A stretch of 64,000 nt of DNA from assembly GCF_006345805.1 (NCBI RefSeq), contig NC_043002.1, forward strand, positions 68,200,001 through 68,264,000, given 5' to 3'. The position numbers and the translations under genes are program-made. Shown here piece after piece: positions 3,700-57,930 of the stretch (its first letter is position 1; every line of letters begins with the position of its first letter). This DNA comes from Octopus sinensis (taxonomy: Eukaryota). The notes under the pieces were generated by a model. That model was not told where the DNA came from and did not search any database. It saw only the letters and a program-made list of their open reading frames with translations.

Positions 3700-3987
3700 G
3701 TGTTATTCTATGTTTACCAGCGTCACCTTACTGGCACATGAAAAAACATTCGAACGAGGTTGTTGCCAGTACCGCCTGGCTGGCCCTTGTGCTGGTGGCA
3801 CATAAAAGCACCCACTACACTCTCAGAGTGGTTGGCGTTAGAAAGGGCATCTAGCTATAGAAACTCTGCCAGATAAAGATTGGAGCCTGGTGCAGCCATC
3901 TGGTTTGCCAGTCCACAGTCAAATCGTCCAACCCATGCTAGCATGGAAAGCGGATGTTAAACGATGATGATGATGATGATGATGATT
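3700..3987 (+). mobile_element. RTE 3' tail fragment
   Basis: ggtggcacataaaagcacccactacac..ccatgctagcatgg..aaacgatgatg, matching 12160-12353. Confidence 0.88.
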
Positions 3988-9060: not shown

Positions 9061-11864
9061 GTAATCGAGGTAGTCAGAGTAAGTGACAGAGTAATTAAAA
9101 TTAGATTAGTCCTTCACCATAGGTCAGCTACCATCATCTCGGCATATGCCCCTCAACCAGGGCTACCGGAAGGACAAAAAGACCAATTCTATGACACCCT
9201 ATTGCGGACTACCTCGTTGACAAATGACTGTGACCTTCTCCTCATGGCAGGTGATTTCAATGGACATGTTGGACGGCATGTCGGGGGCTTCCATGGCGTT
9301 CATGGAGGCTACGGTTTTGGCTCTCGTAATGAGGAGGGAACCAGGCTGCTGGAGTTCCGCGATGCAAATGACCTTATGGTCTGCAATACCAACTTCAGGA
9401 AACCCACCTCTCACTTAGTCACCTACCGTTCTGGCAGACACACTAGCCAAATTGACTACATCCTTGCCAGAAAAAGGGAAAGAGGGCTGCTTATAAATGC
9501 CAAAACCTTTCCAGGCGAAGAATGTACTCCTCAACATAGATTAGTAGTTAGCGACTTCAGGATCAGAGCTAAATGGTTGCCCAGAAGAAGACCAGCTTGG
9601 AGGAGAAGGGTCTGGAAGCTTAAAGATCCTGCAAATGGACAGAGATTTAGAGACATACTACTCGAAGCCTTTGACGAAATAGAAGGGGATATAGCTTCAC
9701 TTAATGTGGAAGACAACTGGAGATTTCTACGGGACAATCTGCTGACAGCCACTGACCAGATCTGTGGATGGAGCAAAGTACCATCTCGACCCAGAGTAAC
9801 ATGGTGGTGGAACACTGTGGTTGACAGGGCTATTAGACAAAAGAGACAGGCTTGGAAGGACTGGAAGAACGGTGGTAGCAGGGAATTGTATCAGACAGCC
9901 AGAAGGGAAGCTAGGAGACAGGTTTATTTAACCAGAGGGGAAGCGGATAAGAAAAAATTTGCCAATGTTCTGAGCCGTGAGGATGAAAGACTTGAGGCAT
10001 TTCGTGTTGCAAGACAGTGTGTGAGAGAGAATCGTGATGTGGTAGGAGAGAAGTGTGTTCGCATGGATGATGGTTCACTTGCGCTAAATGAGGATGCAAA
10101 GAGAGAGGTTTGGAGATGCCACTATGAAAGGTTACTGAATAAAGAAAATGAGTGGGATAAAGAGAGTCTGCTGAATGTCAACCCAACAGAGGGACCAGCC
10201 ATCCGAGTTGAAAATTCTTTGGTAGTTAAAGCAATTAGAAGCATGAAGACAGGGAAAGCCCCAGGCCCATCAGGAATTACTGCAGAGATGCTCAAAATAT
10301 CTGGCAGTGTCGGCTATAACCTAGTCACCTGTATAGTCAACCAGGTGATACACGAAGGAGTCATACCCAATGACTGGTGTAGCAGCATACTAGTCAACTG
10401 CTACAAAGGTAAAGGTGATGCCCTAGATACAAATAATTACAGAGGTATCAAGCTGTAGGATCAGGTAATGAAGGTTACGGAGAGGGTCATAGCCCAACTA
10501 ATTAGAGAGAGAGTTAGTTTAGATGAGATGCAGTTTGGGTTCGTGCCAGGGAAAAGTACCACTGATGCTATATTCCTGGTAAGGCAGCTGCAGGAGAAAT
10601 ACCTAGCCAAAGATAAGCCCCTGTACCTGGCTTTCGTTGACATGGAGAAAGCTTTTGATAGGGTCCCCCGATCCCTTATCTGGTGGTCAATGAGGAAACT
10701 AGGGATAGATGAATGGCTGGTGAGGGCTGTGCAAGCCATGTACAGAGATGCCGTAAGTAAGGTTAGGGTTGGCAACATGTACACCGAAGAATTCAAAGTA
10801 GAGGTTGGGGTCCACCAGGGTTCAGTACTCAGCCCCCTCCTATTTATCATAGTCCTCCAGGCAATTACGGAGGAATTCAAGACAGGTTGCCCCTGGGAGC
10901 TCCTCTACGCTGACGACCTTGCTCTAATTGCTGAGTCACTATCAGAACTTGAAGAGAAGTTCCAGGTGTGGAAGGAGGGTTTAGAATCGAGGGGCCTTAG
11001 AGTCAACCTAGCTAAAACCAAAGTACTAATAAGTAGGAAGGTAGACAATCCACAAATGTCTTCAGGAAGATGGCCCTGCTCGATCTGTAGAAAAGGTGTA
11101 GGTAGAAACTCTATAAGATGTACCCAGTGTAAGCTATGGACACATAAGAGGTGCAGCAATGTCAAAGGTAGGCTAACTGGGAAGATAGTTTTTGTATGTG
11201 GCAGATGCTCGGGAGCATTAACCTCCGAAAATCTGCAGAAAACAACTTCCGTCACTTTCCAGGGGGAAAAACTAGAAGTAGTTGATAGCTTCTGTTATCT
11301 AGGTGACCAAGTCAGTAGTGGGGGTGGGTGCGCTGAAAGTGTAACTGCTAGAATAAGAATAGCCTGGGCAAAGTTTAGGGAGCTCTTACCTCTGCTGGTG
11401 ACTAAAGGCCTCTCGCTCAGAGTAAAAGGCAGACTGTATGATGCGTGTGTACGAACAGCCATGCTACATGGCAGCGAAACATGGGCTGTGACTGCTGAGG
11501 ACATGCGTAAGCTCGTGAGGAATGAAGCCAGTATGCTCCGATGGATGTGTAATGTCAGTGTACATACTCGACAGAGCGTTAGTACCTTGAGAGAAATGTT
11601 GTACCTAAGAAGCATCAGTTGTGGTGTGTGCAAGAGAGACGATTGTGCTGGTATGGTCATGTGGCGAGAATGGATGAAGATAGGTGTGTGAGAAAGTGCC
11701 AATCCCTAGCAGTTGAGGGAACCTGTGGAAGAGGTAGACCCAGGAAAACCTGGGACGAGGTGGTGAAGCACGACCTTTGAACTTTAGGCCTCACTGAGGA
11801 AATGACCAGCGACCGAGACCTTTGGAAACATGCTGTACGTGAGAAGACCAGGCAGGACAAGTGA
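9061..11864 (+). pseudogene. RTE ORF2 (APE endonuclease - RT with internal PHD finger - thumb), disrupted
   Basis: ORFs 8974-10458 and 10468-11691 are in the same frame, separated by TAG at 10456-10458 (TTG in the copy at about 48075). An extra TG near 11625 shifts the C-terminus. The consensus stop is TGA at 11862-11864 after ..EKTRQDK. Confidence 0.93.
11071..11208 (+). other. PHD finger (C4HC3) inside the LINE RT
   Basis: WPCSICRKGVGRNSIRCTQCKLWTHKRCSNVKGRLTGKIVFVCGRC has ligand spacing CxxC..CxxC-x4-H-x2-C..CxxC. Confidence 0.88.
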
Positions 11865-12353
11865 GCCCAGCCCATTTATGCATGCCTTTCCTCCCTTGGA
11901 TACAAAGACCTGTTGAGGCAAGCGAAGTCGATATAGAACCTCATCCGACGACAGGCACCCATGCCAACCCCCTTTGCTTGCGAAGACATGTTGGGGTAAT
12001 CGAAATCGAATTGAACCAGCCAGGACCCCTGGTCTGGTGGTACGTAAAAAGCACTATCCGACTCATGGCCGATGCCAGCGCCGCCTCGACTGGCTTCCGT
12101 GCCGGTGGCACGTAAAATACGCCAATCCGACCGTGGCCGTTGCCAGCCTCGCCTGGCACCTGTGCAGGTGGCACGTAAAAAGCACCCACTACACTCACGG
12201 AGTGGTTAGCGTTAGGAAGGGCATCCAGCTGTAGAAACATTGCCAGATAAGACTGGAGCCTGGTGCAGCCTTCTGGCTTCCCAGATCCCCGGTCGAACCG
12301 TCCAACCCATGCTAGCATGGAGAATGGACGTTAAACGATGATGATGATGATGA

Positions 12354-12566
12354 AGGGGCTAAACACAAAGGGGACAAACAAGGACAGAAAAGGGATTAAG
12401 TCAATTACATCAACCCCAGTGTGTAACTCGTACTTAATTTATCGACCCCGAAAGGATGAAAGGCAAAGTTGACCTCGGCGGAATTTGAACTCAGAACGCA
12501 ACAGCAGACGAAATAGTGCTAAGCTTTTCACCTGGCGTGCTAACATTTCTGCCAACTCGCCGCCTT
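12354..12566 (-). mobile_element. Meta-like SINE body (its tail at 9040-9060 is displaced by the LINE)
   Basis: ttgcccacaag|..|aggggctaaacac reconstitutes the intact sequence seen at 33315-33350 and (rc) at 63190-63225. Confidence 0.88.
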
Positions 12567-14515
12567 TTAGGGTCAATAAATTAAGTACCAGTTGAGTACT
12601 GGGGTCGATGTCATCAAGGGTGTTACTTCTGCCGCACCCTGTATATTATTAAGGCACTGTGTTTACAGCCAGATGTCCTTCCTATTGCTAACCCTTACAT
12701 GTTTCACAAGTAAGGAATTTCTAATTTCACATTATTTCAAAAGTAGAAAGCTAAGACTGACAAGGAAATGACAAGCTTCACAGCTTGTAAATCAGAGCTT
12801 TTTCGTGCAAAGTGCAGAGGACATAAACAGTCCACATATGTACACACAAACTCACATATTCATTCCTAATCCATTCCAATTGCTCCTAACCCTCTCTTCT
12901 AAAACATGAATTAGCCATGTAACCTTTCTAAAGACCTGTTCTGCTCTATTCTGGCTTTCATGCTTTACCCCCACATCTACTAGCATAAAGCTATCACTCT
13001 CAAGATTTGTAGTTTCACAATCTATATGATGACTTCACTAGTGCTGGTAGCATGAAAAAAGCACCCAATTGTAAAGTGGTTGGCTTTAGGAAGGGCATCG
13101 GGCAGTAGAAACCAAACCAAAGTAGACAATGGCTATTCTGACTGCCCTCAATCAGGGCAGCCAGGAAAATCTACTGAAAGAATGGACTGATATATTTAGA
13201 ACAGAAAGATGACTGCAGTTGATATTTTAAACAAAGTTTAACAGAAATACCATATGCAGATAGTGTCACTACAATCAAAAATTTACTAAAGCAGTTTGGG
13301 CTTATTGGAGGTGTTGTATGTATAAAGGAATAAAAAGAAAAAAGAGAGAGAGAAAAGAAAAAAAGAAAAAAAACTACTTTTCTCTGGAAAACCGAGGTGC
13401 CCACATTCAGTTTGCTTATGAACATAAGAACCGGACATAAACAGACAGCTCAAAAATCTTGTAATTAGGTGATTCAAACATTAATGAGTTTGGCTTTGAG
13501 GACCAAGTGTTCATTTAACATCATAAAGAAGGATCTGATTCAGTTAATCCAACAGTTAAATATAGTAGTATCAAGTCCTTCATGTGTGTTAGGCTCCCTG
13601 TGATAACATTGCATCATCAATGCAACCTTAGCTTACATTAGATACACTGTATGATATTCTAGATATATTTCTTTTCTGTATACAGAACATGGACATATCC
13701 TAGATGGCATTGAAATCTTGCTGTCTTTCATGCTAAAAAGTTTGTCTTTGCTAGGATGCCTTGAAATTTTATTCACTGCACGTCTTGCTTTGTCTCTAAT
13801 CCTGTGACAGCTTGTGCTATGAGAATTCGGTCACCAACAAAGAGAAATTCCCATAGGAAACCATTTTTAACCCTTCAGCATTAAAATAGTCATATCCGGT
13901 CCTCATACTGTACCTGTTTTATATTCAGACAGGTTAGGCTTAGTCACTCACATATACTTATAATGTTATTCTAAAAATAGGCAATCTCATCATGGAAATA
14001 TCTAAGCTACAAGATAATACATTATGAATTGAAAACAATGAATAAATGAGCATTATATTTGATATAACCTGAATGCTAAAGAGTCTAGAGAACTATAGTA
14101 TACAGAAGATAGCTGAGGACTGACCCCTGATGAACTGCAATTTGCAGGCTAAATTCCTTGTTGAACTCATTACTAATACTCAGACTACAACAGCATGTGT
14201 GCACATGGTTTGCAATGTTCTGGCAAGCTGTCCATGTATGCCTAGTTTTCTTAGTGACCACAGGACTGAATATGATACCCTGTCAAAAATCATTTGTAGG
14301 TCAACAAAGGCTTGGTTGCTAAAACCCTTTGCTGTAGTTGTCTCACTAGAAAAAGGTCATCAGAAGTATCCTGTCCCGGTATAAATCTTGACTGCATCTC
14401 ATCTAAACTAAATTTTCCTCCTGATTACTCAATTGTTGAAAGGCTTACCTCTTATACTGATTCTGTTTTAATGCATTTCATACACATAAGCCATATAATC
14501 ATTATCGTCATTTAA

Positions 14516-15885: not shown

Positions 15886-16524
15886 AACCTTTCTACTATA
15901 GATGCAAGGCCTGATATTTGGGGGTAGAGGACCAATCGATTTCATCGACCCCAGTGTTTGACTGGTACTTAATTTATCAACTCCGAAAGAATGAAAGGCA
16001 AAGCTGACCCTAGCAAATTTGAATTCAGAACATAAAGACAGCTGAAATGCCGTTGAGCATTTTGCCCAGTATATGAACGATTCTGCCAGCTCACCATCTT
16101 TGATAAATTTGAAATAGTCCTTTCTATTATAGGCACAAGGCCTGAAATTTGGGGCAAGGGGATAGTTGATTACATCGACCCCAGTACTCAACTCGTACTT
16201 AATTTATTGATCCCAAAAGGATGAAAGGTAAAGTCGACCTCAGCGGAATTTGAACTCAGAACATAGTGATGGGCAAAATACTGCTAAGCATTTCATCCAG
16301 TGCACTAACAATTCTTTTCTACTATAGTCACAAGGCCTGAAATTTGTGGGAGGAGGCCAGTCGATTAGATCAATTCCAGTATACAACTGGTAATTAATTT
16401 ATCGGCCCCGAAAGGATGAAAGGCAAAGTCGACCTCGTCAGAATTTGAACTCAGAACATTAAGACAGACAAAGTATCACTAAGTATTTTGCCCGGCGTGC
16501 TAACAACTCTGCCAGCCACCACCT
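15886..16524 (-). mobile_element. Three head-to-tail Meta-like SINEs
   Basis: tttctact/ttatag(g/t)cacaaggcctga at about 15888, 16118 and 16314. Confidence 0.85.
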
Positions 16525-17689
16525 TATAAATCTGAAATAATATGATTAAATAAGTATTACATTTGACTGAGTAATCTGAATGCTACAGGGTTAAAGAGTT
16601 AATCACCTACATACTTATGCTACACTCTGCAAACCAAAGCAACAAAGGAGTTCCCAAGTGGTCACTCATCCTGGCAATACTGCAAAACTCCAATCTCCTT
16701 CAAATTCTAGGTCAACTTAACCTGGGGGCCACACAACACCAATGCATAACATTTTACTTTCAAGGGTCATTTACATATTTTCTTTTTAGCTTTGTTCTTT
16801 TTGTTTTCTTTTGTTCGCAGACATAGCTCTGTAGTTAAAGAAGTTTGTTTGCAGCCTCATGATTTTGGGTACAGTTCCACTCTGTGGCACCTTGAGCAAA
16901 TGTTTACGTTTATAGCCCCAGACTAACTAATGCCTTGTAGGTAAATTTGGTAGGCAGAAACAGTGTGGAAACCATTAATAGAACTCTACTGAAACAGCTG
17001 CTATAAATTTTAAACACCATTTGTGTTTACTTTTTATGTCTATGTCAAACCAAGGACCAAACCCCAAGTCAGATCTATAGTTTAAATTGGATTTGGTACT
17101 TGCATATCTACACTAGCCTACCAACACTTGATGTATTCAATGTTGTTCATTTCACTGTGAGCTCTATATTATCATACCTAGCCATTTCTGGTATCTTATG
17201 TGTTGCAGTGCCTAGATTGTAATGAAGCCTTATAACTATATTATGTATGTGTATGTATGTGTGTGTGTGTGTATGTCAGGCACGTGCCATCAGTAATTAC
17301 TCAGGGTAGGCAGCTGGTGACTTTTATGTAGTAAAACACACAAAAAATAAGCGAAATACAGGCACACGACTGAGATGAAGGCAGATTTACTTCTGCCTTT
17401 ATAGCCTGTAAAGAAAATGTAGTTGTAGGAATGTACACAGGATGTGTACTACAGCAGTACTATGTGTAGCTTAAATACAGAGATTGAAAAACAGGGGTGA
17501 ATTATGCCTACCTAATCTACAAAAAAAAATAATAAAGCATTTTGTATTTTATGCATAGTAATCAGAGTAACCTTCATAATTTTATTGAATTAGGTACATA
17601 TTTTGCCATAAAAGGACAATGTTGTCATCGATCTATTTTATTCAATGTAAGCACTGCCTAACTTGCCTACCTAGGTAGTACATCCGTGG

Positions 17690-22239: not shown

Positions 22240-22605
22240 CCTGCTGTGCTTAACTTGGATCGTAGGGTGACCTGCTGTGCTTGAAAAGACCTATTGAGTC
22301 AAGTACATCAACATCAAAATAAAAATCAAATTGAAATTGCAATTGTGATACCCGTGCTGGTGGCATGTAAAAAGCACCATCTGAACATGGCCGATGCCAG
22401 TGCTGTCTTGACTAGCTTCTGTGCCGGTGCACATAAAAAGCACCCACTACACTCACAGAGTGGTTGGCGTTAGGAAGGGCATCCAGCTGTAGAAACACTG
22501 CCAGATCAGACTGGAGCCTGGTGCAGCCTCCTGGCTTCCCAGACCCCGGTCAAACCATCCAACCCATGCTAGCATGGAAAACAGACGTTAAACGATGATG
22601 ATGAT
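22240..22605 (+). mobile_element. RTE 3' UTR fragment
   Basis: Same modules and (GAT)n tail as the autonomous copy. Confidence 0.88.
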
Positions 22606-23257
22606 GTATTTAATAATCACTGAAATTCCAACTAGTCTGATTTTCATGTTTTATTATTTGCAATTTTTACAATATTGAAATAAACTAGTTCCTTCATGTG
22701 TTACACATTCATCAGGTTTATGTAGTGACAGTCACGTTGAACAATTGACAACTGTGTATACACACACACACACACACACATAATGGGCTTCTTTCAGTTT
22801 CCATCTACCAAATCCACTCACAAGGCTTTGGTCAGTCTGAGGTCACTGTCGAAGGCACTTGTCCAAGATGTCATGCAGTGAGACTGAACCTGAAATCATA
22901 TGGTTCAGAAGCAAACTTCTTATCACACAGCCATGCTTTAAATGCACTTGGCAGACGTTTTTATAACATTTGCACAGGAAACCAATGTAAGTACATCACG
23001 TTATTTCCCTCACACAATACAATTTGATTATTAAGACATGATTCATGACCACTCCTCAGAGGAAATCTACTCATTTCCCTGCCCATGAAGAGGATAGAAC
23101 AGCAAGTGCAATGCAAACAAAGAAGTTTGCTTCCCAACCACATAGCTCCAGGTTCAATCCCACTATGTGGCACCTTGGGCAAATGTCTTCTATTATAGCC
23201 TTGGGCTGACCAAAGTGGATTTGGTAGACAGAAACTGAAGAAACCTATCGTGTGTAA

Positions 23258-28599: not shown

Positions 28600-28755
28600 C
28601 ATCATCATCATCATCATCGTCGTTTAACGTCCGTTCTCCATGCTAGCATGGGTTGGACGGTTCGACCGGGGTTCTGGGAAGCCAGAAGGCTGCACCAGGC
28701 TCCAGTCTAATTTGGCAATGTTTCTACAGCTGGATGCCCTTCCTAACGCCAACCA
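28600..28755 (-). mobile_element. RTE 3' tail fragment
   Basis: Reverse complement of 12200-12353. Confidence 0.88.
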
Positions 28756-31661: not shown

Positions 31662-34097
31662 CAGACACAGACACACACAAAGATCTGACATAATCCAACT
31701 GGGTAGCCCAATTTCATAATCCTAAGTACCAGGATACAGTAATCCAGGTCTGTGGCACTCCAAGAAATAAGGTATTCCAATAAGTGCCCATTTTGACTTG
31801 ATAAATGTAGAAAGAAGTCCATGGACTTGCAATGACTACATGCCAAAGAACAAAATAAAAAGAAGACAGGTGAAGTTTGTAGTCAAATTTATTAGTCTGA
31901 CACTCGGTGAAATGGAAAGAGTGAATGTGATATTGTTCTTCCTTGGCATAGGATATCCAGTGGGAAGAGAGAAGAAAAAAACCAAGAATAAAGAAAAAAA
32001 AAATATAAGGATTCAGCCAAGAAGGATTGCTTGTGTGAAGCTGGTGTACATGATGGCCATTGAAACTGTGTATACTGGGCTCTCTGCAGATATAGACACT
32101 TGAGACATGCTGTATGTTTTAGCAAGTGCTATTTTAAGATGGGCGCCATGGATGCTGCAGTATCAGGAGGCCAATTAATATAATTCATCTACTTTCCTCA
32201 CCCTTAACTAGGCCTATCAGAAACTGTGTAGAATCACAAGATCTCAAAAGTCAAAGAGAAACCCTGTGTGATTGCCCCTTGCCAACTTCATTATGGTCAC
32301 TCCAAGTGAACCTCTGATGTGGTGATTACAAGCCAACCACTTGGTTGATCCACACCACTGCATGTTCATTTCAGTCAATGAACAAGTCTTTACATTGTTG
32401 CTCTGAGTAAATGTAGAAGCTTCTTCCTTCTGTCTGCAAGAAATAGCAGCCACATTTCCCTCAGGTCAAACCCTACCATCTTAGAAAAGCAGAACATGCT
32501 GGATAATATGGACTTGAGTTTACTGTGCCAAGGAAAAAGACAGGATTGACACAGATGGAATACTCTGAATCCTTTAGCAGTTAAACCAATTATATCAAAC
32601 CTAAATATTCTACCTGTTTGATATTCAAACTAGCCAGACCCCACCTCTCACACCTACTCTACAATGTCACTAAGAATAAGGATTAATTTGAAACAATAAG
32701 AATAAATAAGTTTAACAGAATTAACTGAATGCCAAAGGGTTATTCCTAACTGTTTCATCTGGGTTAAACAACTAAAAAATATATTTTTATTCAAACCCTA
32801 TAAACAAGTAAAAATTAGTTCAATAGAGACAGAGTTTGTGGCTTAGTATGTTCAGTTCAACGTCCTACTAAACAAACATTTACTGGTTATGAATTGCAAA
32901 CCTACAATAGTAAGTATCTTAAGCAGTTGTGGAAAGTATGTCAAGAACTTGTGATTGTCGCTTGATATTGCAAAGTCTCTTATTAAAAGGCACCGTGTAC
33001 AAATATCTGCTTGCTGAGATAGTGTTGATAACAGTCATAGATGAAGTGTTTTAGAATTTGTCATGGCCTCGTTGAAAAATAATGAAGTTAAAAACTGAGG
33101 TTGATGATGACGAAGACAATGACAATAATAATAATTACATATGATGTTTAAATATTATAGTTATTAAATAAGAACATATTACTAAGAATGCCTGTTCAAA
33201 ATCATCATCGTTTAATGCTTGTTTTCCATGTTGGCATGGGTTGGACAGTTTGACAGGAGCTGGCCTGCTGGGGAGCTGTTCAGATACCAAATTGTTTGTT
33301 GTGGAATGGTTTCTTATTTCTTTATTGCCCACAAGGGGCTAAACACAGAGGGGACAAACAAGGACTGACAAAGGGATTAAGTCAATTAGATTGACCCCAG
33401 TGAATATCTGGTACTTAATTTATCGACCCCAAAAGGATGAAAGGCAAAGTCAACCCCAGCAGAATTTGAACTCAGAATGTAATGGCAGACGAAATACTAC
33501 TAAGCATTTCGCCTGGTATGCTAATGTTTCTGCCAGCTCGCCACCCTAGATGTTGTAGAATCAACATCTTGTTGTGGAATGGTTTCTATAACTGGATGCC
33601 TTTCCTAATGCCAACAACTTTACAGAGTGTGCTGGGTGCTTTTTATGTGCCACCAGCATAGGTGTGTTCATGCAACTGCCAGTGCACACAAGTGCATTTT
33701 ATATAAGACCGGCACATCTAAAGAACAAGCTTCTATGTATGGATGACAACGATTTTACTTTTCTTGATGCATCTTTTCATGTACAGCAATTCACAACTCC
33801 CGATTCCTAGTCATTTCCTCAGTGAGGCCCAGCATTGTGTTCCCACTGAGGTCAACTTTGCCTTTCATCCTTCTTGGACAGATGAAATGAAGTACCAGTC
33901 AAGTACTGGGGTTAATGTAACCGACTTGCCCCTTCCCCTTCAAGTTGCTGGCCTTGAATGCTACGATGGACCAGAATCTTGTTTAAGGAAATATTGTGAT
34001 CTCCATTACTTATATGCCATGGAAACTGGGTAGCCAACCTTACAAGTTCTGAGGCACAAAGAAGAGAAACACTGTATAACAATAACAGGTAAGTGAG

Positions 34098-34976
34098 ATC
34101 ATCAGCAGCAGCAGCGCCATTTAACATCCATTGGACAGTTTGACTGGGGACTGGCAAGCCTGTAGGCTGCACCAGGCTCCAATTTGCTCTGGCAAGGTTT
34201 CTACAGCTGGATGCCCTTCCTAATGCCAACCATTCTGAGAGTATAGTGGGTACTTTTTACATGCCATCGGTACAGGAGCCAGTCAAGCAACACTGGCATC
34301 CACCACATTTGGACAGTGCTTTTTACGTGCTACCAGCACCAGTGCCAGTCAGGTGGTACTGGCATCAGCCACAACTACAATTTCACTCGACTCAGCAGGT
34401 TTTCTCAAGCACAGCATATCTCCAAAGGTCTTGGTCTCTTGTCATTGCCTCTGTGAGGCCTAATGTTCAAAGGTTGTGCTACACCACCTCATCCCATGAC
34501 TTCCTGGATCTACCACTTCCACAGGTTCCTTCCATTTGTTAGGGTATGACACTTCTTCACACAGTTCTTCTCATCCGTATGTAGTATATGACCATACCAG
34601 CGCAGTCATCTCTCTTGCACACCACATCTGATGCTTCTTATGTCCAACTTCTCTCTCAGGGCACTTACACTCTGTTGTATATGCACACTGACATTACATA
34701 TCCAGCAGATCATACTAGCTTCAGTTCTTTCAAGCCTTGGCAGTCAGGGCCCATGTTTCACTGCCATGTAGCATGGCTGTTCGCATACATGCTTCATACA
34801 GTCTACCTTTCACTCTGAGCGAGAGGCCCTTTGTTACCAGCAGAGGTAGGAGCTCTCTGAACTTTGTCCAGGATATTCTTATTTTAGTGGCTGCGCTCTC
34901 AGAGCATCCACCCACATAACAGACTTGGTCACCTATGTAGTGGAAACTATCAACTACTTCTAGTTTCTCTCCCTGG
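34098..34976 (-). mobile_element. Older RTE LINE 3' fragment
   Basis: Minus ORF 34730-35005 gives QGEKLEVVDSFHYIGD..LLVTKGLSLRVKGRLY..LHGSETW. Decayed 3' UTR and tail near 34100. Confidence 0.92.
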
Positions 34977-35272
34977 TATGTGTAAATAAATATGCACAAA
35001 TGCATGTTCTTTTATAATTTAAAGAGTAGATATAAATATACAGTAAATTACAAAGAAGGGTAATTGAGTTATAATCTGAAAGTGGTAATGTGCCTATAGA
35101 ACAGTGATTCCTAACCTCTCCTATGTCCTGAACCCCTACAAAATGTCTGATTAATTTTCATACCCACCAACCCACCTACAAAAGTAATATCACATATAAA
35201 AATGAAAAATGTTCTTTTTCTAATAACTAGCATTTTTTTTATGTTTTAAATATAGGCATATATATAGGCTTA

Positions 35273-35659: not shown

Positions 35660-36769
35660 ATAACAACATACTGTAGTAAGGGGGTAAAGAAAAAGAACTA
35701 GAAAAATAAGCATAAAAATTTGCATAAAATGCAAATGTAAACTGAGCCATTAGAAAAAATAGTAAGCAGTAAAATTAATGATGTATCATGAACTTTTAAT
35801 AGTTTTATTCTGAAAAGTGATTTAAATAAAGTACATATTTTCTCGCTTTGTGAAAACACTGAAATGCTATCCTGTACCCTTTGGAATGCAGTCACTCCAG
35901 ATTGGAAAACCTTGCTATAGAGCAATTTAAAGTGCACTTCACTAATGCTTGCATAGATCAAACAGAATTCAGTGAGGCAGATTTTCTAGTCATAAGCCCT
36001 TCTGATCACCAAGGCTCAATATTTCCTTATGGCTGGACATGTTTTCACAAAAGACTGAAAATGAGGGGCACCACTTGTATGACAGCAACATTTCTTGATA
36101 ACTAGCACATGATATCAAGACAAGGAGGGAGGGATGAACACGCACACACACACACTCGCACTAGGCTTTGCATTTCTGTCTATCAAATCCATTCACAAAG
36201 CTTTATAAATACAAGAATTTAAATAAATGATTTTTTATTACACATAGTGGCATTTCAAAATAAATCTTAAAGAATGAGCTAGTGTTTCTGCAGATACTTC
36301 AACACATATTGCATGTCACTGCAATATAAATAAAACGAACACAAAAACCATTGTTGTGTAAGTTGAAGATGAATGACAAAGAAACAAAAGGAGATCTCAC
36401 ATGACTTTTGTGTCAACATAAATCCCATCTCAATAGCAGATAAAGTATTGGCAACAGTTTCCCCATTTCAAGTATATTATTACTGTATTTATTCAATGTC
36501 ATAATCAGAGATGTATATCAAATACTTCTCAAATGTGTAATTTCATCAAAAAGTAGTCCAAGTAAGAAATACTAAACTATGGCTGTCTACTGAAAATATT
36601 TCTTTAACAATCAAAGTCCTGTGCTTTATTGCATTATGGAGCATTTTCCTAAAGTGCAATGCAGTGGAATCAAAACCTTAACTTTAACTGTCTTTAGCCT
36701 TATGTTGACCAATACTTGTGGAGTGAAATTTGGTAGATGGAAACAATATTGAAATTTTTATTACATGTA

Positions 36770-37745
36770 TCATCATCATTTAGCAACCACTTTCCATGCT
36801 GGCATGGGTTAGATGGTTTGACTGGAACTGATATGCCCGAGAGCTGTTCCAGGGGCTAGTCTGATTTTGGCTTGGTTTCTATGGCTGGATGCCCTTCCTA
36901 ATGCTAGCCACTCCAAGAGTGTAGTGGGTGCCTTTGCTGTGTCATTGGCATGAGTGCTTTTACATGTCACCAACACAGGTGCTGGTATGTGTCACCGGCA
37001 CAGGTGCTTCTATATGTCACTGGCACTGGCCACAACTACGATTTCACTTGACAAGTCTTCTCAAACACAACAAATCACCAAAGGTCTTCATCACTTGTCA
37101 TTGCCTCCACGAGATCCAACTTTCAAAGATCCTGCTTCATCACATTCCATGTCTTTCTGTGTCTATCTCTTCCACAGGTTCCCTCCAGTTAGAGATCAGA
37201 ACTTTTTTTTACACAGCTGTCCTCATCCATATGCATCCCATGACCATACCAGCACAGTCATCTCTCTTGCACAACACATCTGATGCCTCTTATGCCCAAC
37301 TTTTCTCTCAAGATGCTTACACTGTCATACATGCACACTGATAATGCACATCCAGTGAAACATACTAGCCTCATTTCTTTCAAGCCTTCACATGTCCTCT
37401 ACAGTCACAGCCCATGTTTTACTGCAGTGTAGCATGGCCGTTCACATACAGGCATCATACAATCTGCCTTTCACTCTAAGAAAGAGGCCCTTTGTTACCA
37501 ACAAAGGCAGAAGCTCCCTGGACTTTGCCCAGCCTATTCTTATTCTAGCAGCTATGCTCTTCCACTGCTGACTTTGGTCATCTGGATAACAGAAGTTATT
37601 GACTACTCCCAGGTATCCCCACTGGCACTTGATAGAGTCTATTTTCTGTACATTTCTAGTGTTTATCGTACATGTACATCTGCCACATACAAAGACTATT
37701 TTCCCAGTTAACATTCCTGTGATATTGCTGCACCTCTTATGGCTT
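36770..37745 (-). mobile_element. Decayed RTE LINE fragment including the C-terminal half of the PHD finger; another RTE 3' tail (about 37750-37960) sits directly at its 5' end
   Basis: Minus ORF 37442-37843 gives HKRCSNITGMLTGKIVFVCGRC..IGWAKSRELLPLLVTKGL. (ATC)n tail at about 36770. Confidence 0.88.
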
Positions 37746-40187
37746 GCACCAGGTACATCATCATCACCACCACCACCACCACCATTTAACAGGTTTTCTA
37801 TGCTTGGATGGTACAATGAAAGCTGATAAGCCAGAGGACTCAATTGAGCTCATATGTCAGCTTTGGTATGAATTCTATGGATGGATGCACTTCCTAATTC
37901 CTACAACTTTACAAAGTGTACTGGGGTTTTTTTTTCACGGCACCAGCACTAGTGAGGTCACCAAAAGACAAAACCCCTCAACTGAGTAGGGTAATAGTAT
38001 TGATGGAAGTGGCTTTGTGCAAATGATGAGAGGTTAAAGTGTAATAGAGGAACAGGAGTCTAGGAATAGAAAAGACACATTTGTCTTTTTACAGCATAGG
38101 ACAAGAACCAGTACATCCCAACAGAAAAGCCTGCAGTATATAAGTCCAACTGAATTATCTGTCTTTATGTTAATGTCCACTTATATTTCATGTCTCATGA
38201 GGATAATGAAATAAGAGCACAAACAAAGTACTTGAAAATGACTAAAACCAGTAAGAAAATAATTAGTGAAAGATATAACAGCCACTTAGCATTATATTCC
38301 ATCTAACAAAATTTGTTGAGTTTTTATGTCCTTTTTTCCATGTTATCATGGGTTAGATGAATATATTATTGAGATGTTGTTTTATAGTTGGAGGGGCATC
38401 CTGAGGGACGACTTAGATTATAGTTGGATGTCCTTCCTGTCACTAACCCTTATATGTTTCTCAAATAAGGGATATCTTATTCCATATCTTTGAAGAGTAC
38501 AAAGCCAGTAAGCAAACACATGTGAGGGGAAATGACAACAACATCACAGCCTTTAGCTGAGGGTTTAATCTACACAACTGTAGACAAACAAACACACACA
38601 CATTATAGGAGCAAGCATGTTTTCAGGTTCAGTTCCACTGCATGGCAACCTCCAGCCCCACAATGTGGCAAGTGTCTCCTATAACCATACAGTCACACCT
38701 ACACCTTGATTTTGCATAAAACAATCTCTGAACAGGTTCAAATCAATGCAGATGTGAAAATTTAAAACTATCTTCCTTCAAATATTCTTTCTACAGTAGG
38801 CACAAGGCTTGAAATTTTTTTTGGGGGGGGGGGCAATCGATTACATCAACCCCCATTGCTCAACTGGTATTTATTTTATCGACCACAAAGGCAAAGTCGA
38901 CCTTTGGTGCAATTTGATCTCAGGATGTAAAGTCAGAAGCATTTTGCCTGGTGTGTTAATGATGCTACCAGCATACCACTTTTGTTCCCATTAACATTCA
39001 GATTACTCTGTCTAATGTAATGCCTTTTTATTCACATTGTTTTGAATTAATCATTCATTATCTTGTAGCTTTTAGATTACAATGATGTAGCTGTTCATTT
39101 TTAGAATGACATTGTAGGTTAGGTGCGAAAGGCTTGAGATGGCCAGTTTGAAGATAAAATAAGTAGAATATTTGGGCTGAATATGACCAGTTTAAATGCT
39201 AAAGGATTAAATGTAAAATGTAATACACAGGTACAGATGCCTTCTTTAAAAGACCACTCTATGGAAAACAGCAAAATTACAGCATAAAGAAACCTTTGTT
39301 TACGTTATAGGACAACAGAAGAATGACAACACTCATTATTTATAAGATAAAATGGATCATGATGTTTACTCGATTAATATCTGAGAAGTTATGAATAATG
39401 ATTCATCAAGCTCTGTTGAGACACATGCTTGACAAAGCTGTTTTGAAGCCATTGTCCATCACCTTTAATGTCAATCAATATGCTAGAACAAATACGGAGT
39501 TACTAGATTATAATGCAATCTTTAAAACATAGTATAACAAAGCAGTGACCATACAAGGCCAAAACTTATGAAAAGGGGCTGGAATTATAAAGAGCTCAGA
39601 GTAAATATGACATGAATCAAATAAATGCTAACATGTGATAACATGTCTAAATATAAAGACACATAAACATGGAAACAGCTTAGTTTCGCTTTTGCATATT
39701 AGTTGTGTGCAGGCGACAACATTAACAGATGCAGAACAAATGCAGCAAAAGTTGTAGCACTAACTTGAAGTGTATGATTCACATATTAATTACATGAGCT
39801 GGCAATAATGTAATGAAATGCCTACAGCAATAAACTATAGTCCCTTGCACTAAGACCAACTTCTACCTCTCTGGGTTAATAAATTAGAGTACCAGATGAG
39901 TACATGAATCAATTAGATATTTCTATAAGGCATTCTATATGTAAATGAAGTTTTAATTATTATACGAATATAGCAGTTGGGCTACATGTTTATACAGTTA
40001 TTTCCTGGCGTGTTTGTTTGTTTTTTTATTTTGTTTTTTTTTTGTTTTTGTTTTTTTTTTTAATACGAAAGTTAATAATGATGTATGCATTGCTTACTAC
40101 GGCTGAAAAATTTTATAAATAATGTAAGGAATGTAAGGAAGTGACAGAAATGAAGGGAGATAATCTGACGGCAGCATTACAATTAAC

Positions 40188-40745
40188 ATCATCATCATCA
40201 TTTAACGTCCGCTTTCCATGCTAGCATGGGTTGAACGGTTCAACTGGGGTCTGGGGAGCCCGAAGGCTGCACCAGGCCAGTCAGATCTGGCATTGTTTCT
40301 ACAGCTGGATGCCCTTCCTAACGCCAACCACTCCGAGAGTGTAGTGGGTGATTTTATGTGCCACCGACACAGGTGCCAGACGAGGCTGGCGAACGGCCAC
40401 GCTCAGATGGTGTTTTTTATGTGCCACCGACACAGGTGCCAGACGAGGCTGGCAGACGGCCACGCTCGGATGGTGTTTTTATGTGCCACCGACACAAGTG
40501 CCATATGAGGCTGGCGAACGGCCACGATCGGATGGTGTTTGTTACGTGCCCACAGCACGGAGGCCAGTCGATGCGGTACTGGCTACGGCCACGTTCGGAT
40601 GGTTTTCCTGTGTGCCACCGGCACTGGTACCACAAAGATACAAATTCCATTGATGTTCATCTATTTTGATTTTTTGATTTTCACTTGCCTCAACAGGTCT
40701 TCACAAGTGTCACACACTTGCCTCAACAGGTCTTCACGAGTGTCA
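40188..40745 (-). mobile_element. RTE 3' UTR-only copy with 4-5 tandem 62-66 bp modules
   Basis: catcatcatttaacgtcc..ccatgctagcatgg tail; module starts at about 40356, 40419, 40481, 40544 and 40610. Confidence 0.9.
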
Positions 40746-46959: not shown

Positions 46960-47810
46960 TTGGACCAGGTCATGTGGCGAGAATGGATGAGGATAGCTGT
47001 GTGAAAAAATGCCACACCCTAGCGGTTGAGGGAACCTGTGAAAGAGGTAGACCCAGGAAGACCTGGGATGAGGTGGTGAAGCACAACTTTCGAAATTGAG
47101 GCCTCACTGAGGCAATGATGAGGTGGTGCAGCCATCTGGTGAAGTATGACCTTTGAACATTGGGCCTCACCAAGGCAATGACTAAAGACCAGGACCTTTG
47201 GAAATATGCTGTGCTTGAGAAGACTCGGCAAGCCAAGTGAAACCATAACCTCATAGCCTTATGCCAAGGGTGTAACCAGAACCACTTATGTGTACCTTTC
47301 CTTCATTGGACACTAAACTCTGCTTGTGAAGACCTGTTGAAGCAAGTGAAATTAAAATCAAATTCGATGACTAGCATCCGTGCTTGTGGAGCGCTAAGAG
47401 TACCATCCGAGTGGGATCATTCCCAGAGCAACAAACTGGCTTCCATGCCGGTGGCACGTAAAAAGCACCATTCGAGAGTGATCGTTACCTGCGTTGCCTC
47501 ACTGGCACTTGAAAAAACATTCGAGTGAGGTCGTTGCCAGTGCCACTGGACTGGCTCCTGTTCAGGCAGCACATAAAAAGCACCATTTGAACATGGGCGC
47601 TGCCAGTACCGCCTGACTGGCCCTCATGCCGGTGGCACGTAAAAGCACCCACTACATTCTCGGAGTGGTTGGCGTTAGGAAGGGCATCCAGCTGTAGAAA
47701 CCCTGCCAGATCAGATTGGCGCCTGGTGCAGCCATCTGGTTCGCCAGACCTTAGACAAATCGTCCAACCCATGCTAGCATGGAAAGTGGACGTTAAACGA
47801 TGATGATGAT
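46955..47810 (+). mobile_element. RTE LINE 3' fragment, apparently internally deleted, abutting the Tc1 right end
   Basis: ctgttggaccaggt followed by catgtggcgagaatggatg (GHVARMDE region), 3' UTR modules and a (GAT)n tail at 47799-47810. Confidence 0.9.
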
Positions 47811-48021: not shown

Positions 48022-50076
48022 TATCACAAATAACTACAGAGGTATCACAAATAACTACAGAGGTATCAAGCTGTTGGACCAGGTGATGAAGGTTACGGAG
48101 AGGGTCATAGCCCAACTAATTAGAGAGAGAGTTAGTTTAGATGAGATGCAGTTTGGGTTTGTGCCAGGGAAAAGTACTACTGATGCTATATTCCTGGTAA
48201 GGCAGCTGCAGGAGAAATACCTAGCCAAAGATAAGCCCCTGTACCTGGCTTTTGTTGACATGGAGAAAGCCTTCGACAGGGTCCCCCGATCCCTTATCTG
48301 GTGGGCAATGAGAAAACTAGGGATAGATGAATGGTTAGTGAGAGCTGTGCGGGCCATGTATAGGGACGCCACTAGTAGGGTGAGGGTTGGAAATGAGTAC
48401 AGTGAAGAATTCCGGGTAGAGGTAGGGGTCCACCAAGGCTCAGTACTCAGCCCCCTCCTATTTATCATAGTCCTCCAGGCAATAACGGAGGAATTCAAGA
48501 CAGGATGCCCCTGGGAGCTCCTCTATGCTGATGACCTTGCTCTAATTGCTGAGTCGCTATCAGAACTGGAGGAGAAGTTTCAGGTGTGGAAACAAGGATT
48601 AGAATCGAAGGGCCTCAGAGTCAATCTAGCTAAAAGCAAAGTCGTAATCAGTAGGAAGGTAGACAAATCACAAACACCTTCAGGTAGATGGCCCTGCTCG
48701 ATCTGTAGAAAAGGTGTAGGTAGAAACTCTATAAGATGCACCAAGTGTAAGCTATGGACACATAAGAGATGCAGCAATGTCAAAGGAAGGCTAACTAGGA
48801 AGATGGTTTTTGTATGTGGCAGATGCTCAGGAACAATAACACTGAAAATGCTCTGAGACCAACTTCCGTCACTTTCCAGGGAGAAAAACTAGAATAGTTG
48901 ATAAGTTTCCGTTACCTAGGTGACCAAGTCAGCAGCGGGGGCGGGTGTGCTGAAAGTGTAACTGCTAGAGTAAGAATAGCTTGGGCAAAGTTCAGAGAGC
49001 TCTTACCTCTGCTGGTGACAAAAGGCCTCTCGCACAGAGTGAAAGGCAGACTGTATGATGCGTGTGTACGAACAGCCATGCTACATGGCAGTGAAACATG
49101 GGCCGTGACTGCTGAGGATATGCGTAAGCTCACTAGAAATGAAGCCAGTATGCTCCGATGGATGTGTAATGCCGGTACTCACACTCGGCAGAGTGTAAGT
49201 ACCTTGAGAGAAAAGCTGGACCTAAGAAGCATCAGTTGTGGTGTGCAAGAGAGACGTTTGCGCTGGTATGGTCATGTGGCGAGAATGGATGAAGATAGTT
49301 GTGTGAAAAAGTGCCACACCCTAGCGGTTGAGGGAACCTGTGGAAGAGGCAGACCCAGGAAAACCTGGGACGAGTGGTGAAGCACGACCTTCGAACTTTA
49401 GGTCTCACTGAGGAAATGACTAGTGACCGAGACCTCTGGAAGTGTGCTGTGCGCGAGAAGACCCGACAGGACAAGTGAGTCCACAACCCGTGGCCTTCTA
49501 CATGGGATGGAGCCAGCCTACGTATGCATACCTTCCCTTCTTGGGACACAAAACTCTACTTGTGAAGACGTGTTGAAGCAAGTGAGGATCAGAATCGAAA
49601 TCGATCAATGGAAATTGCGGATGTGCTACCAGTGCCGGTGGCATGTCGAAACTCTGCTCGTGAAGACCCATTGAGGCAAGTGAGGATCAGAATCGAAATC
49701 GATCAATGGAAATTGCAGATGTGTTACCAGTGCCGGTGGCATGTAAGAGAACTTTCCGTTCGCGACCGTTGCCAGCACCGACCTGTTTCGTGTCCGTTGC
49801 CAACCTCGCCTGGCCCTCGTGCCGGTGGCACATAAAAAGCACCATCCGTTCGTGGCCGTTGCCAGCTCTGTCTGGCACCAGTGCGGGTGGCACGTAAAAA
49901 GCACCCACTACACTCACGGAGTGGTTGGCGTTAGGAAGGGCATCCAGCCGTAGAAACACTGCCAGATTTGACTGGGCCTGATGAAGCCTTCTGGCTTCAC
50001 AGACCCCAGTAGAACCGTCCAACCCATGCTAGCATGGAAAACGGACGCTAAATGATGATGATGATGATGATGATGA
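48022..50076 (+). mobile_element. Second RTE LINE copy, 5'-truncated at the start of the RT, frameshifted, full 3' UTR
   Basis: ORF 48074-48856 is nearly identical to the RT+PHD of the 9-kb copy (PHD 48689-48826). ORF 48898-49380 is the thumb. Ends with a (GAT)n tail. Confidence 0.96.
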
Positions 50077-52195: not shown

Positions 52196-52430
52196 TCATC
52201 ATCATCATCATCATCATTTAACGTCCGCTTTCTATGCTAGCATGGGTTGGACGATTTGACTGAGGACTGGCAAACCAGATGGCTGCACCAGGCTCCAATC
52301 TTGATCTGGCAAAGTTTCTACAGCTGGATGCCCTTCCTAACGCCGACCACTCCGAGAGTGTAGTGGATGCTTTTACGTGCCACTGGCATGAGGGCCAGTC
52401 AGGCGGTACTGGCAACAGCCACACTAAAGC
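52196..52430 (-). mobile_element. RTE 3' tail fragment
   Basis: (ATC)n followed by ttaacgtcc..gatgcccttcctaacgcc..gtagtgg. Confidence 0.85.
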
Positions 52431-56696: not shown

Positions 56697-57503
56697 TTTA
56701 AGGCGGTGAGCTGGCTGAATCATTAACATACTGAGCAGAATGCTAGGCAACATTTTGTCCATCTTTATGTTTGGAGTTAAACTTCCACCAAAGTTGACTT
56801 TGGCTATCATCCTTTCAGGGTTGATAAAATAAGTACCAGTTGAACACTGGGACTGGTGCTATCAACTTGCCCTCTCACCCTAAATTGCTGGCCTTGTACC
56901 GAAATTTGAAACCATTATTATTATTATCATCATCATCATTCAGTAGTCTTATTTTCATCACGTGCTTTCACTGCACTATGAAGCACAGCTATGTGTGCCT
57001 TGGGTATGTGCTGTGATTTGTTGTGATACTCTTATTGTTACTGTATTGAAAGTGCTTTGCGTAGGATGTGTGCGGTGTCTAGTAGTACTATTTTCTGTAT
57101 GTCATACATACTTGTTAGTCTTGGTGTTTTTGTTTATGTATTTGTCTGAATATTTTTTTATCATACCTAATGCACCTATTATGATAGGAATTGTTTCTGT
57201 TTTTAGACTCCACATTCAAGTTATTATTATTATTATTATTAATATTATTATTAAGGGGGAGGCGAGCTGGCAGAATCATAAGCACATGGGGTAAAATGCT
57301 TAGCAGTATTTCATCTGTTGCTATGTTCTGAGTTCAAATTCCACCAAGGTCAACTTTACCTTTCATCCTTTGGGGAGGGGGGGGTTGATAAAATTAAGTA
57401 CCAGTTGCATACTGAGATCAATCTAATCGACTAGACCCCTCCCTAAAAATTTCAGGCCTTATGCCTTGACTAGAAAAGATTATTATTATTAATATTATTT
57501 TTA

Positions 57504-57541
<38 letters not shown>

Positions 57542-57930
57542 ATTCCACCGAGGTTGACTTTGCCTTTCATCCTTTCAGGGTCGATAAATTAAGTACCAGT
57601 GAAACACAGGGTGGGGGGAGATAGATGTAATCGACAAGTACCTACCCCCAAAATTGCAGGCTTTGTGCCTTTAGTAGAAAGGATTATTATTATTATTATT
57701 AAAGTGTTAAACTGGCAGAATTGATAGCATGCCAGGCAAAATACTTAACAGCATTTCATCCTTTTTAACATTCAGAGTTCAAATTCCACCAAGGTTAACT
57801 TTGCCTTTCGTCCTTTCTGGGTCGATGAAATAGATACCAGTTAAGTACTGAGGGTTGATATAATCAACTAGCCCTTCTCTCCCTAAATTTCAGACATTGT
57901 GCCTTTAGTAGAAAGGATTGTTATTATTAT
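56697..57930 (+). mobile_element. Cluster of four Meta-like SINEs with (ATT)n tails
   Basis: Heads or cores at about 56700, 57255, 57540 and 57700. Confidence 0.82.

Follow-up and report, generated by a model that had tools for sequence, protein, structure and literature searches.

What is a zinc finger doing inside the catalytic domain of a LINE reverse transcriptase (RT), and what might it bind there? The question is raised by the window analysed here, a stretch of 64,000 nucleotides of the Octopus sinensis genome, in which the RT of a LINE contains eight potential zinc ligands between positions 11071 and 11208 of the plus strand. A sequence-only reading of the window had taken them for a PHD finger, inherited across the LINE family and perhaps able to read histone H3.

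An RTE-type LINE with an insert in its RT palm

The element concerned, copy A, extends on the plus strand from 8974 to about 12358, as delimited by tblastn and ORF analysis. It is truncated at its 5' end and comprises a partial APE endonuclease, the RT with its embedded finger, a thumb and C-terminal region, a 3' UTR and a (GAT)n tail, with Pfam matches to Exo_endo_phos_2 and RVT_1. We set its 3' end by aligning eight tails: all eight terminate in ..GGACGTTAAACGATGATGATG, all end in (GAT)n, and their flanks differ beyond this repeat. The 3' UTR is short and closes on a simple-repeat tail, as in the RTE group. Copy A has decayed, with a single in-frame stop (10456-10458) and a frameshift near 11620-11690. 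An ORF fragment of 407 amino acids (10468-11691, plus strand) nevertheless runs from the RT fingers and palm through the PHD finger to motif 7 and the thumb, and its residues 2-188 match RVT_1 with an E-value of 1.2e-28.

Other copies are found in the same window. Copy B (48023-50075, plus strand) is about 88% identical to copy A in amino acids and about 90% in nucleotides; it is 5'-truncated within the RT and, like copy A, has decayed through stop codons and frameshifts. Copy C (36769-37744, minus strand) is older, with 58% amino acid identity, and its 5' truncation point, inside the PHD finger, is a microsatellite. Copy D (34131-34982, minus strand) is truncated just downstream of the finger, which is therefore gone, and copy E (14088-14415, minus strand) is what is left of an old RT from a related LINE. 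Scanning the window and region with Rfam and for tandem repeats gave no matches.

With one ORF for APE and RT and with its (GAT)n tail, the element is most probably a LINE of RTE type. In BLASTP it scores 1e-44 against BovB, versus 6e-16 against R2 and 1e-13 against L1, in pairwise comparison with these three references. Octopus elements of like kind have been assigned to the RTE clade (PMC9115989). As in BovB and other RTE-clade LINEs, the single ORF encodes an N-terminal APE endonuclease followed by the RT, no C-terminal zinc knuckle was detected and the 3' tail is a short microsatellite. Identity with BovB is about 30% on either side of the insert, and both share the C-terminal motif RLRWFGH..GRPRKTW..DR..WR (common form GRxRxxW..DRxxWR).

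The two differ in the segment that joins RT motifs 6 and 7. BovB has 21 amino acids from KTK (motif 6) to DFIFLG (motif 7), versus about 87 in the octopus lineage, and is without the 44-amino-acid C4HC3 finger; an alignment of three BovB proteins shows a clean gap of 67 columns at this place, and PF00078 is the sole domain on 120 of the 120 listed BovB proteins. The short BovB linker had been stated correctly in the sequence-only reading. The insert, put there at about 60 amino acids, measures 67 alignment columns against BovB (67 codons, about 11038-11238, plus strand).

Within this insert, the finger core (11071-11208, plus strand, from W-P-C1 to C8) translates as WPCSICRKGVGRNSIRCTQCKLWTHKRCSNVKGRLTGKIVFVCGRC, with Cys1 at 11077-11079 and Cys8 at 11206-11208. 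The corresponding segment of copy B (48689-48826) reads WPCSICRKGVGRNSIRCTKCKLWTHKRCSNVKGRLTRKMVFVCGRC, and the two copies, each with WPC at the start, share the spacing C-x2-C-x10-C-x2-C-x4-H-x2-C-x14-C-x2-C. In copy C, positions 37676-37742 of the minus strand read ..SHKRCSNITGMLTGKIVFVCGRC.. and retain the His, C6, C7 and C8. Translation therefore bears out the ligands claimed earlier for each of these copies, all eight in A and B and the C-terminal ones in C.

The flanks place the insert with respect to the RT fold. Upstream of the copy A finger lies ..GLRVNLAKTKVLIS, which contains motif 6 (GLRVNLAKTK, 10993-11022, plus strand), aligned with motif 6 of R2 and BovB, and in which G176, L177, V179, N180 and K183 are invariant. 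Downstream lies ..EVVDSFCYLGD, containing motif 7, the primer grip (FCYLGD, 11290-11307, plus strand), aligned with DFIFLG of BovB; F275, Y277, L278, G279 and D280 are invariant or nearly so. An insert between an RT motif and FCYLG was indeed described before, although FCYLG was there ascribed to the thumb. Since FCYLG is motif 7, the primer grip of the palm, the insert belongs to the palm, with motifs 6 and 7 on either side of it, rather than to the palm-thumb junction, and it fills the motif 6-7 ('6a') loop.

Identity of the insert

The isolated insert matches the Pfam PHD profile PF00628 with 26.3 bits (E-value 7.7e-6), above the gathering score of 24. Four intact relatives score 23.7, 27.0, 28.5 and 26.1 bits, and the architecture can already be seen in public data, where PF00628 is pre-annotated on more than 100 of the listed homologues. 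A profile of the family searched against the PDB matched PHD fingers only, the strongest match being Pygopus (1.8e-7). Part of the PHD signature is an aromatic residue two places ahead of the seventh ligand (PMC9640981); it is F in 61 and Y in 52 of 113 homologues.

Structure prediction points the same way. The AlphaFold2 (AF2) model of the finger superposes on the PHD fingers of BPTF, TAF3, MLL3 and BHC80 with rmsd values of 2.1 to 3.1 Å and Foldseek probabilities of 0.97-1.0. The top 50 PDB matches in Foldseek are nearly all PHD fingers, with weak E-values (at least 0.03) for what is a small domain. The AF2 model of the whole RT has a pLDDT of 83.8, and its best Foldseek matches are R2 and L1 ORF2p. 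By sequence and by model, then, the insert is a PHD-type C4HC3 finger with a predicted cross-braced, two-zinc fold, and the identity proposed from the ligands holds in both the Pfam scan and the structure prediction.

Other zinc-binding folds were considered. FYVE came up only at rank 10 in Foldseek, with an rmsd of 5.5 Å, RING is absent from the top 50 PDB matches, and the C1_1 and C1_2 profiles score under their thresholds.

Distribution and maintenance of the finger

Is the finger a property of the lineage, or an accident of a few octopus copies? Both full copies in the window are decayed, with stops and frameshifts, and the 407-amino-acid ORF taken as a whole reaches only 21.4 bits for PF00628, just below the gathering score; a chance pattern of cysteines, or a recent non-functional capture, might look like this. 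However, the strict C4HC3 motif is kept in 113 of the 120 closest homologues, from Octopus, Hydractinia, Mercenaria and Branchiostoma, the eight ligands are invariant across an alignment of 107 sequences, and this invariance holds in over 1000 clusters and across three phyla. The finger is also kept in intact, full-length ORFs, and its insertion boundary against BovB is clean. The chance or capture explanation is refuted, with a negligible probability left to it, and the family trait asserted by the sequence-only reading stands.

The remaining seven of the 120 homologues keep the insert, with either one mutated ligand (in decayed copies) or an H-x3-C spacing. Loss of the finger was considered for these seven, and none of them is a deletion.

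At 50% identity, 1073 clusters match at E<=1e-10, the top matches being LINE fragments. Intact ORFs of 1046-1096 amino acids show the architecture APE + RVT_1 + PHD; they were taken from the cluster look-up, and a relative found by contig search is 5'-truncated, like the copies in the window. Among the Pfam domains of the full-length ORFs of intact relatives, we detected no other nucleic-acid-binding domain, no RNase H and no C-terminal zinc knuckle. The PHD-bearing lineage is large, with members in cnidarians, molluscs and amphioxus, and the finger is an ancient feature, found broadly among marine animals. Its gain, in the stretch of the RT palm that joins motifs 6 and 7, was probably a single event in the ancestor of the lineage, and strong purifying selection has maintained it. 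Between copies A and B, the finger shows 5 synonymous and 3 nonsynonymous changes and the RT shows 32 and 11, respectively, too few changes for dN/dS to be informative.

PHD fingers encoded by LINEs are also present in the CR1/L2/Jockey group, either in ORF1 or N-terminal to the APE in ORF2 (PMC4120745; PMC3708506). Those fingers are likewise without an assigned role, but they are separate ORF1 or N-terminal modules in a different group of LINEs, whereas the octopus finger lies within the catalytic domain of an RTE-type RT. In the freely available full-text literature that we searched, no paper describes an RTE whose RT contains a PHD finger. A passing mention for the octopus element RTE-2_OV, of a 'C2H2 zinc finger ... 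relatively rare in RTE elements' (PMC9115989), is comparable by description only.

What the finger may bind

Is the finger a reader of histone H3? It could recognise methyl-lysine through a pocket of the H3K4me2/3 type, tether ORF2p to a chromatin state and thereby bias where target-primed reverse transcription (TPRT) starts. The best profile matches are readers (Pygo, PHF2, KDM5B PHD3, PHF23, ALFIN, PHF13, BPTF and TAF3), and the fold matches include BPTF and TAF3 in their H3K4me3-bound form. The finger also sits in a target-facing loop, within possible reach of a nucleosome tail. The Pygopus PHD finger, an H3K4me2/3 reader assisted by BCL9, shares with the LINE finger the elements Y-P-C1, AIxC3 and W-x-H, and its K4me pocket includes Y341 and W366 (PMC2726290). 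The position of Pygo1 Y341, two before Cys1, is aromatic in 107 of 113 homologues (Y in 53, F in 26, W in 18 and H in 10), and that of W366, two before the His, is W in about 99% (87 of 88 cores of equal spacing). Two aromatic walls of a pocket are therefore in place. The two cage tryptophans claimed earlier fall at these positions, and the first of them is conserved as an aromatic residue, not specifically as Trp. Other pocket residues of Pygo1 are matched as well: V350 is V in 86%, A356 is S or A in 98%, and I357 is I.

The rest of the pocket fits less well. The third wall, formed by a Met or aromatic residue three positions before Cys3 or by the Asp lip of Pygo, is lacking: Ser occupies this place in 98 and Ala in 13 of the 113 homologues, as the sequence-only reading had noted for the cage Met, and the D352 lip loop of Pygo, a two-residue insertion, is missing. 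Histone-binding PHD faces are acidic (PMC2726290; PMC9640981); the face of Pygo is negative, and mutation of its E360 abolishes H3 binding (PMC2726290). In the LINE finger the residue after Cys3, the counterpart of E360, is S, T, G or N and acidic in 5%; neither this acidic residue nor the acidic face that would anchor A1 and R2 of H3 is found. Lys or Arg at -3, +4 and +5 instead edge the putative pocket, and the net charge of the finger averages +5.6 per 44-residue core. VIN3 offers a precedent for a classical signature and a basic face without H3 binding (PMC9640981). There is also no sign of a BCL9-like partner for the LINE finger. All in all, we consider H3K4me reading rather unlikely.

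The positive charge itself is a family feature. Per 100 amino acids, charge density is 13 in the finger versus 3.2 in the rest of the protein, and it is higher in the finger in 112 of 113 homologues; Lys or Arg is conserved at positions -3, +4, +5, 23, 24, 29, 31 and 42. The VIN3/VEL PHD finger is alike in its classical C4HC3 signature and its conserved positively charged face, and in VIN3 it binds DNA and RNA rather than H3 (PMC9640981). This likeness is of the PHD fold only, as the VIN3 finger belongs to a ZnF-PHD-four-helix-bundle superdomain in a plant Polycomb accessory protein.

The position of the insert offers a second analogy. For R2Bm, R2Tg and R2Pm, cryo-EM structures show motif 6a touching upstream target DNA or wedged into it (PMC11204384; PMC11601368; PMC13188248). 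Motif order and alignment, rather than superposition, make the insert a putative equivalent of R2 motif 6a, located at the same point of the RT topology, after motif 6 and ahead of motif 7; the placement of the finger along the nucleic-acid path is likewise one we infer from motif order and from R2. The R2 loop, in contrast, is short and without a zinc site, and R2 relies on an RLE nuclease together with ZnF/Myb domains at its N terminus. R2 being an RLE-type LINE, target engagement may differ in APE-type elements.

We tentatively favour docking on nucleic acid or the target site over H3K4me reading as the main role of the finger, at a confidence that falls somewhat short of even. The finger would act as a docking module where TPRT occurs, taking the place of the short motif 6a loop that R2 wedges into upstream target DNA. 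It would offer a strongly basic surface together with exposed conserved aromatics (a Y, F or W two before Cys1 and, at the same distance from the His, a W). Such a combination is typical of zinc modules that grip nucleic acid, and we therefore expect the main ligand to be nucleic acid, either target DNA close to the nick or, possibly, the 3' end of the template RNA or the primer-template junction. The finger could in this way contribute the binding energy for which other LINE clades rely on zinc knuckles at the C terminus or DNA-binding domains at the N terminus, neither of which we detected in this family. Where the target is nucleosomal, it may in addition touch a histone tail.

Some observations count against docking. 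The closest relatives in sequence and fold are all histone H3K4me readers, and four positions of the Pygo K4me pocket (Y341, W366, V350 and A356) are kept or conservatively replaced. A pure DNA-binding role has no obvious need for them.

Could the finger instead contact protein, recruiting a host factor or buttressing and regulating the RT palm and thumb, with no binding of nucleic acid or histone? In Pygo, BCL9 binds to the PHD finger on its rear face. The aromatic residue two before C7 is F or Y in 113 of 113 homologues; in Pygo, MLL1 and VIN3 this residue makes contacts in cis or with ligands other than histones (PMC9640981). The stretch GVGxNSI is more strongly conserved than is usual in PHD loops. 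The finger is also modelled with a pLDDT of 82-92 within the RT versus 71-87 alone, but this gap may stem from alignment depth, with 107 sequences for the RT model and 48 for the isolated finger. A protein contact would leave the conserved strong positive charge without an obvious role, and no partner is known. We regard this explanation as improbable.

Whatever its ligand, the finger has persisted over hundreds of millions of years in the one loop of the RT for which contact with target DNA is known, from R2; it therefore gives a specific and testable way into the question of how APE-type LINEs choose and hold their targets beyond a short nick-site preference. RTEs are the most stripped-down LINEs: they are without a C-terminal zinc knuckle and, in many clades, also without an ORF1 chaperone. 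If the finger binds nucleic acid, it would show how a minimal LINE compensates for its missing domains. If it reads histones, this would be the first LINE with a chromatin reader inside its RT, and an ancient RTE lineage would, by binding a methylated H3 tail or some other methyl-lysine mark, couple the start of TPRT to the chromatin state of the target nucleosome. The chromodomain of chromovirus integrases and the PHD finger of RAG2 are precedents, each from a mobile-element or recombinase enzyme with its own target-choosing chromatin reader; unlike the octopus finger, which lies inside the polymerase palm, they are C-terminal appendages with demonstrated histone binding. The finger also marks a compact site at which a LINE RT accepts an insertion in nature, which bears on the engineering of RT-based insertion tools.

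The PHD-bearing family appears to have been active recently in octopus, and expression of RTE LINEs has been reported in octopus brain.

LINE copies in the window and their PHD finger

Copy A is a 5'-truncated plus-strand LINE (8974 to ~12358). A single reading frame covers the distal portion of an APE endonuclease, matched by Pfam Exo_endo_phos_2, then a reverse transcriptase (RT; RVT_1, E 1.2e-28) and finally a C-terminal region. The copy is decayed, with one in-frame stop (10456-10458) and, towards its end, a frameshift. The ORF reads RKVDNPQMSSGRWPCSICRKGVGRNSIRCTQCKLWTHKRCSNVKGRLTGKIVFVCGRCSGALTSEN.. between ..GLRVNLAKTKVLIS and ..EVVDSFCYLGD, and the limits of 11071-11208 coincide exactly with the Trp that precedes the first zinc ligand (Cys1) by two residues and with the last ligand, Cys8. 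Translation agrees with the sequence-only reading on this location and on a second finger with all eight ligands at 48689-48826, in copy B (48023 to ~50075, plus strand, 88% amino acid identity). The older copy said to keep the C-terminal ligands does so too: copy C (36769-37744, 58% identity), which proves to lie on the minus strand, is 5'-truncated inside the finger and retains the His, C6, C7 and C8. Two more minus-strand copies are present, copy D (34131-34982), beginning directly after the finger, and copy E, an RT fragment (14088-14415).

The eight ligands are spaced C-x2-C-x10-C-x2-C-x4-H-x2-C-x14-C-x2-C. Pfam PF00628 (gathering score 24) gave 26.3 bits (E 7.7e-6) when the insert was scanned by itself and 21.4 bits when the finger was scanned as part of the decayed ORF. 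When a profile of 48 family fingers was compared with all PDB sequences, it retrieved PHD fingers only, Pygopus (Pygo) being the best (E 1.8e-7), followed by PHF2, KDM5B PHD3, PHF23, ALFIN-like, PHF13, BPTF and TAF3. The AlphaFold2 model of a 407-residue fragment (ORF 10468-11691 of copy A), built on a 107-sequence alignment, has a pLDDT of 83.8 (82-92 for finger residues) and matches R2 and L1 ORF2p structures. Modelled alone (pLDDT 72.7), the finger has as its best Foldseek PDB matches the PHD fingers of BPTF, TAF3, MLL3 (PHD6) and BHC80, with rmsd 2.1-3.1 Å and probability 0.97-1.0; the E-values are weak, as is usual for so small a domain (~50 residues). Two residues before C7, where PHD fingers carry their signature aromatic, all 113 of 113 relatives have F or Y. 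From spacing, profiles, predicted fold and signature aromatic together, we conclude that this is a PHD-type finger, as had been proposed from the sequence. Other zinc-finger profiles, C1 and RING-like among them, scored weaker than PHD and under their own thresholds; a FYVE fold appeared only at Foldseek rank 10 (rmsd 5.5 Å), and no RING fold was among the top 50 PDB matches.

Distribution of the family and position of the finger

LINE-encoded PHD fingers are known from ORF1 of the CR1/L2/Jockey group, in line with the first reading's mention of CR1/L2-type elements, and also occur N-terminal to APE in some ORF2s (PMC4120745; PMC3708506). Our literature search, which had many subscription journals outside it, found no published description of one inside an RTE-type RT. 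The 'C2H2 zinc finger' of the 1109-aa octopus element RTE-2_OV, stated to be 'relatively rare in RTE elements' (PMC9115989), may be this domain, labelled differently. Public domain annotation already displays the architecture openly, so that the finger was un-interpreted rather than hidden; what we regard as new is an accessory PHD finger of an RTE LINE at a new position.

Searching 5.8 billion proteins with the 407-residue fragment gave more than 3600 significant matches, of which 120 were listed, most of them already pre-annotated with PF00078 and PF00628. The strict C4HC3 pattern occurs in 113 of these 120; the other seven keep the insert with one ligand mutated or H-x3-C spacing. Throughout the 107-sequence alignment all eight ligands are invariant, and conservation reaches 90% or more at P(-1), G, G, N, I, W and L. 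When 1.84 billion representatives were searched with a finger profile, 1073 clusters (at 50% identity) matched with E<=1e-10, and the best 150 of the 1073 are fragments of LINEs in which RT motifs flank the finger. The finger is thus a family trait and not a one-off capture, and relatives in other invertebrates, anticipated earlier, do exist: the few named sources among the matches listed include Octopus bimaculoides, O. vulgaris, Hydractinia symbiolongicarpus (Cnidaria), Mercenaria mercenaria (Bivalvia) and Branchiostoma belcheri (Cephalochordata). Four different clusters have intact ORFs (1046-1096 aa) that combine Exo_endo_phos, RVT_1 and PHD, with no further domain found in them; the APE, RT and PHD architecture is therefore present in apparently functional elements.

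The octopus element shares 58-62% amino acid identity with Hydractinia copies and ~52% with the Mercenaria copy. The octopus-cnidarian closeness could stem from the sorting of old subfamilies among lineages or from horizontal transfer, a familiar process in RTE/BovB. Several LINE proteins bear bacterial or protist names in the database (Herbaspirillum MAG, Candidatus Thiodiazotropha taylori, Babesia ovata, Mycoplasmopsis arginini and Mycolicibacterium); almost certainly, host DNA has contaminated those assemblies. One 223-aa representative fragment carries finger and linker twice in tandem, the PHD segment having been duplicated locally in one of the family's copies.

Among BovB proteins (cattle, yak, Podarcis), all 120 matches listed are annotated with PF00078 alone. 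They are ~30% identical to this family on either side of the insert and share its C-terminal RLRWFGH..GRxRxxW..DRxxWR, but show a clean 67-column gap exactly at the finger; their KTK to DFIFLG spacing is 21 aa, against ~87 aa in this family, as expected from the short linker ascribed to them. This alignment, the common C-terminal motif and the (GAT)n tail in which the window copies finish fit an RTE-type element, and the apparent clade assignment draws as well on the published placement of such octopus elements in RTE (PMC9115989). KTK is RT motif 6. FCYLG, previously taken for a thumb motif, is instead motif 7, the palm primer grip, which places the finger in the motif 6-7 loop. In R2 this loop is named motif 6a, and cryo-EM has it contacting upstream target DNA or wedging into its distortion (PMC11204384; PMC11601368; PMC13188248). 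From the order of the motifs and from an alignment with R2, we infer that the two sites are equivalent.

Candidate ligands of the finger

Does the finger read methylated H3K4? All its nearest sequence and fold relatives are H3K4me readers, and the published K4me2 cavity of Pygo1 is formed by Y341, W366, V350, A356 and I357 (PMC2726290). We mapped these residues by HMMER alignment to Pygo. The two tryptophans earlier likened to cage residues do fall at Y341 and W366; the second is W in ~99% of the family, whereas the Cys1-side position, although aromatic in 107/113 sequences, is Trp in only 18 (Y 53, F 26, H 10). The V350 position is V in 86%, that of A356 is S/A in 98%, and I357 is matched by I. 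However, the invariant E360 of Pygo, which H3 binding requires (PMC2726290), is replaced by S/T/G/N, the D352 lip loop is missing, and where K4me3 cages have a Met/aromatic residue as their third wall the family has Ser/Ala, extending the Ser noted at first. The putative pocket is moreover bordered by K/R at -3, +4 and +5, and the finger has a mean net charge of +5.6 (range 0 to +12), or 13 per 100 residues, compared with 3.2 in the protein outside the finger; the finger value is the higher in 112/113 sequences. Histone-binding PHD fingers have acidic faces (PMC2726290; PMC9640981), and the VIN3 PHD finger, with a classical signature and a basic face, binds DNA/RNA and not H3 tails (PMC9640981), a precedent against this role. 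On residue mapping and models, H3K4me reading seems rather doubtful.

We tentatively rank first a putative docking role, in which the finger would hold nucleic acid or the target site at the target-DNA-contacting RT loop. It is favoured by the basic surface, the exposed conserved aromatics, the location at that loop and the fact that no other nucleic-acid-binding domain was detected in this LINE type. Docking and histone reading are not mutually exclusive, being compatible on a nucleosomal target. A putative protein-protein or structural module appears the least probable of the three roles.

3' ends and neighbouring repeats

At least eight copies of this LINE's 3' end (~270 bp) occur in the window (3748-3979, 22352-22606, 47529-47810, 49804-50070 and, in copy A, 12084-12358; on the minus strand, 28605-28755, 40187-40490 and 52199-52422). 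All finish ..CATGCTAGCATGGAAAACGGACGTTAAACGATGATGATG, with flanks diverging beyond. Several stand alone and would be insertions with an extreme 5' truncation, or else a SINE sharing the LINE tail, either being typical of RTE-type elements. At 37745-37850, the 5' truncation point of copy C adjoins a microsatellite that reads (GGT)n(GAT)n on the strand of the element, and beside the microsatellite lies diverged sequence like a further tail of this family. Copy C may thus have been joined at, or inserted beside, the simple-repeat tail of an older copy. Copy A has in its 3' UTR an internal tandem duplication of ~80 bp (12036-12117 versus 12104-12180, 77% identity). Directly 3' of this copy is a different short interspersed repeat (12353-12570), which recurs many times in both orientations (303-371, 2615-2990, 15936-16528, 33333-33545, 57258-57880 and 63046-63206), some copies forming adjacent inverted pairs.
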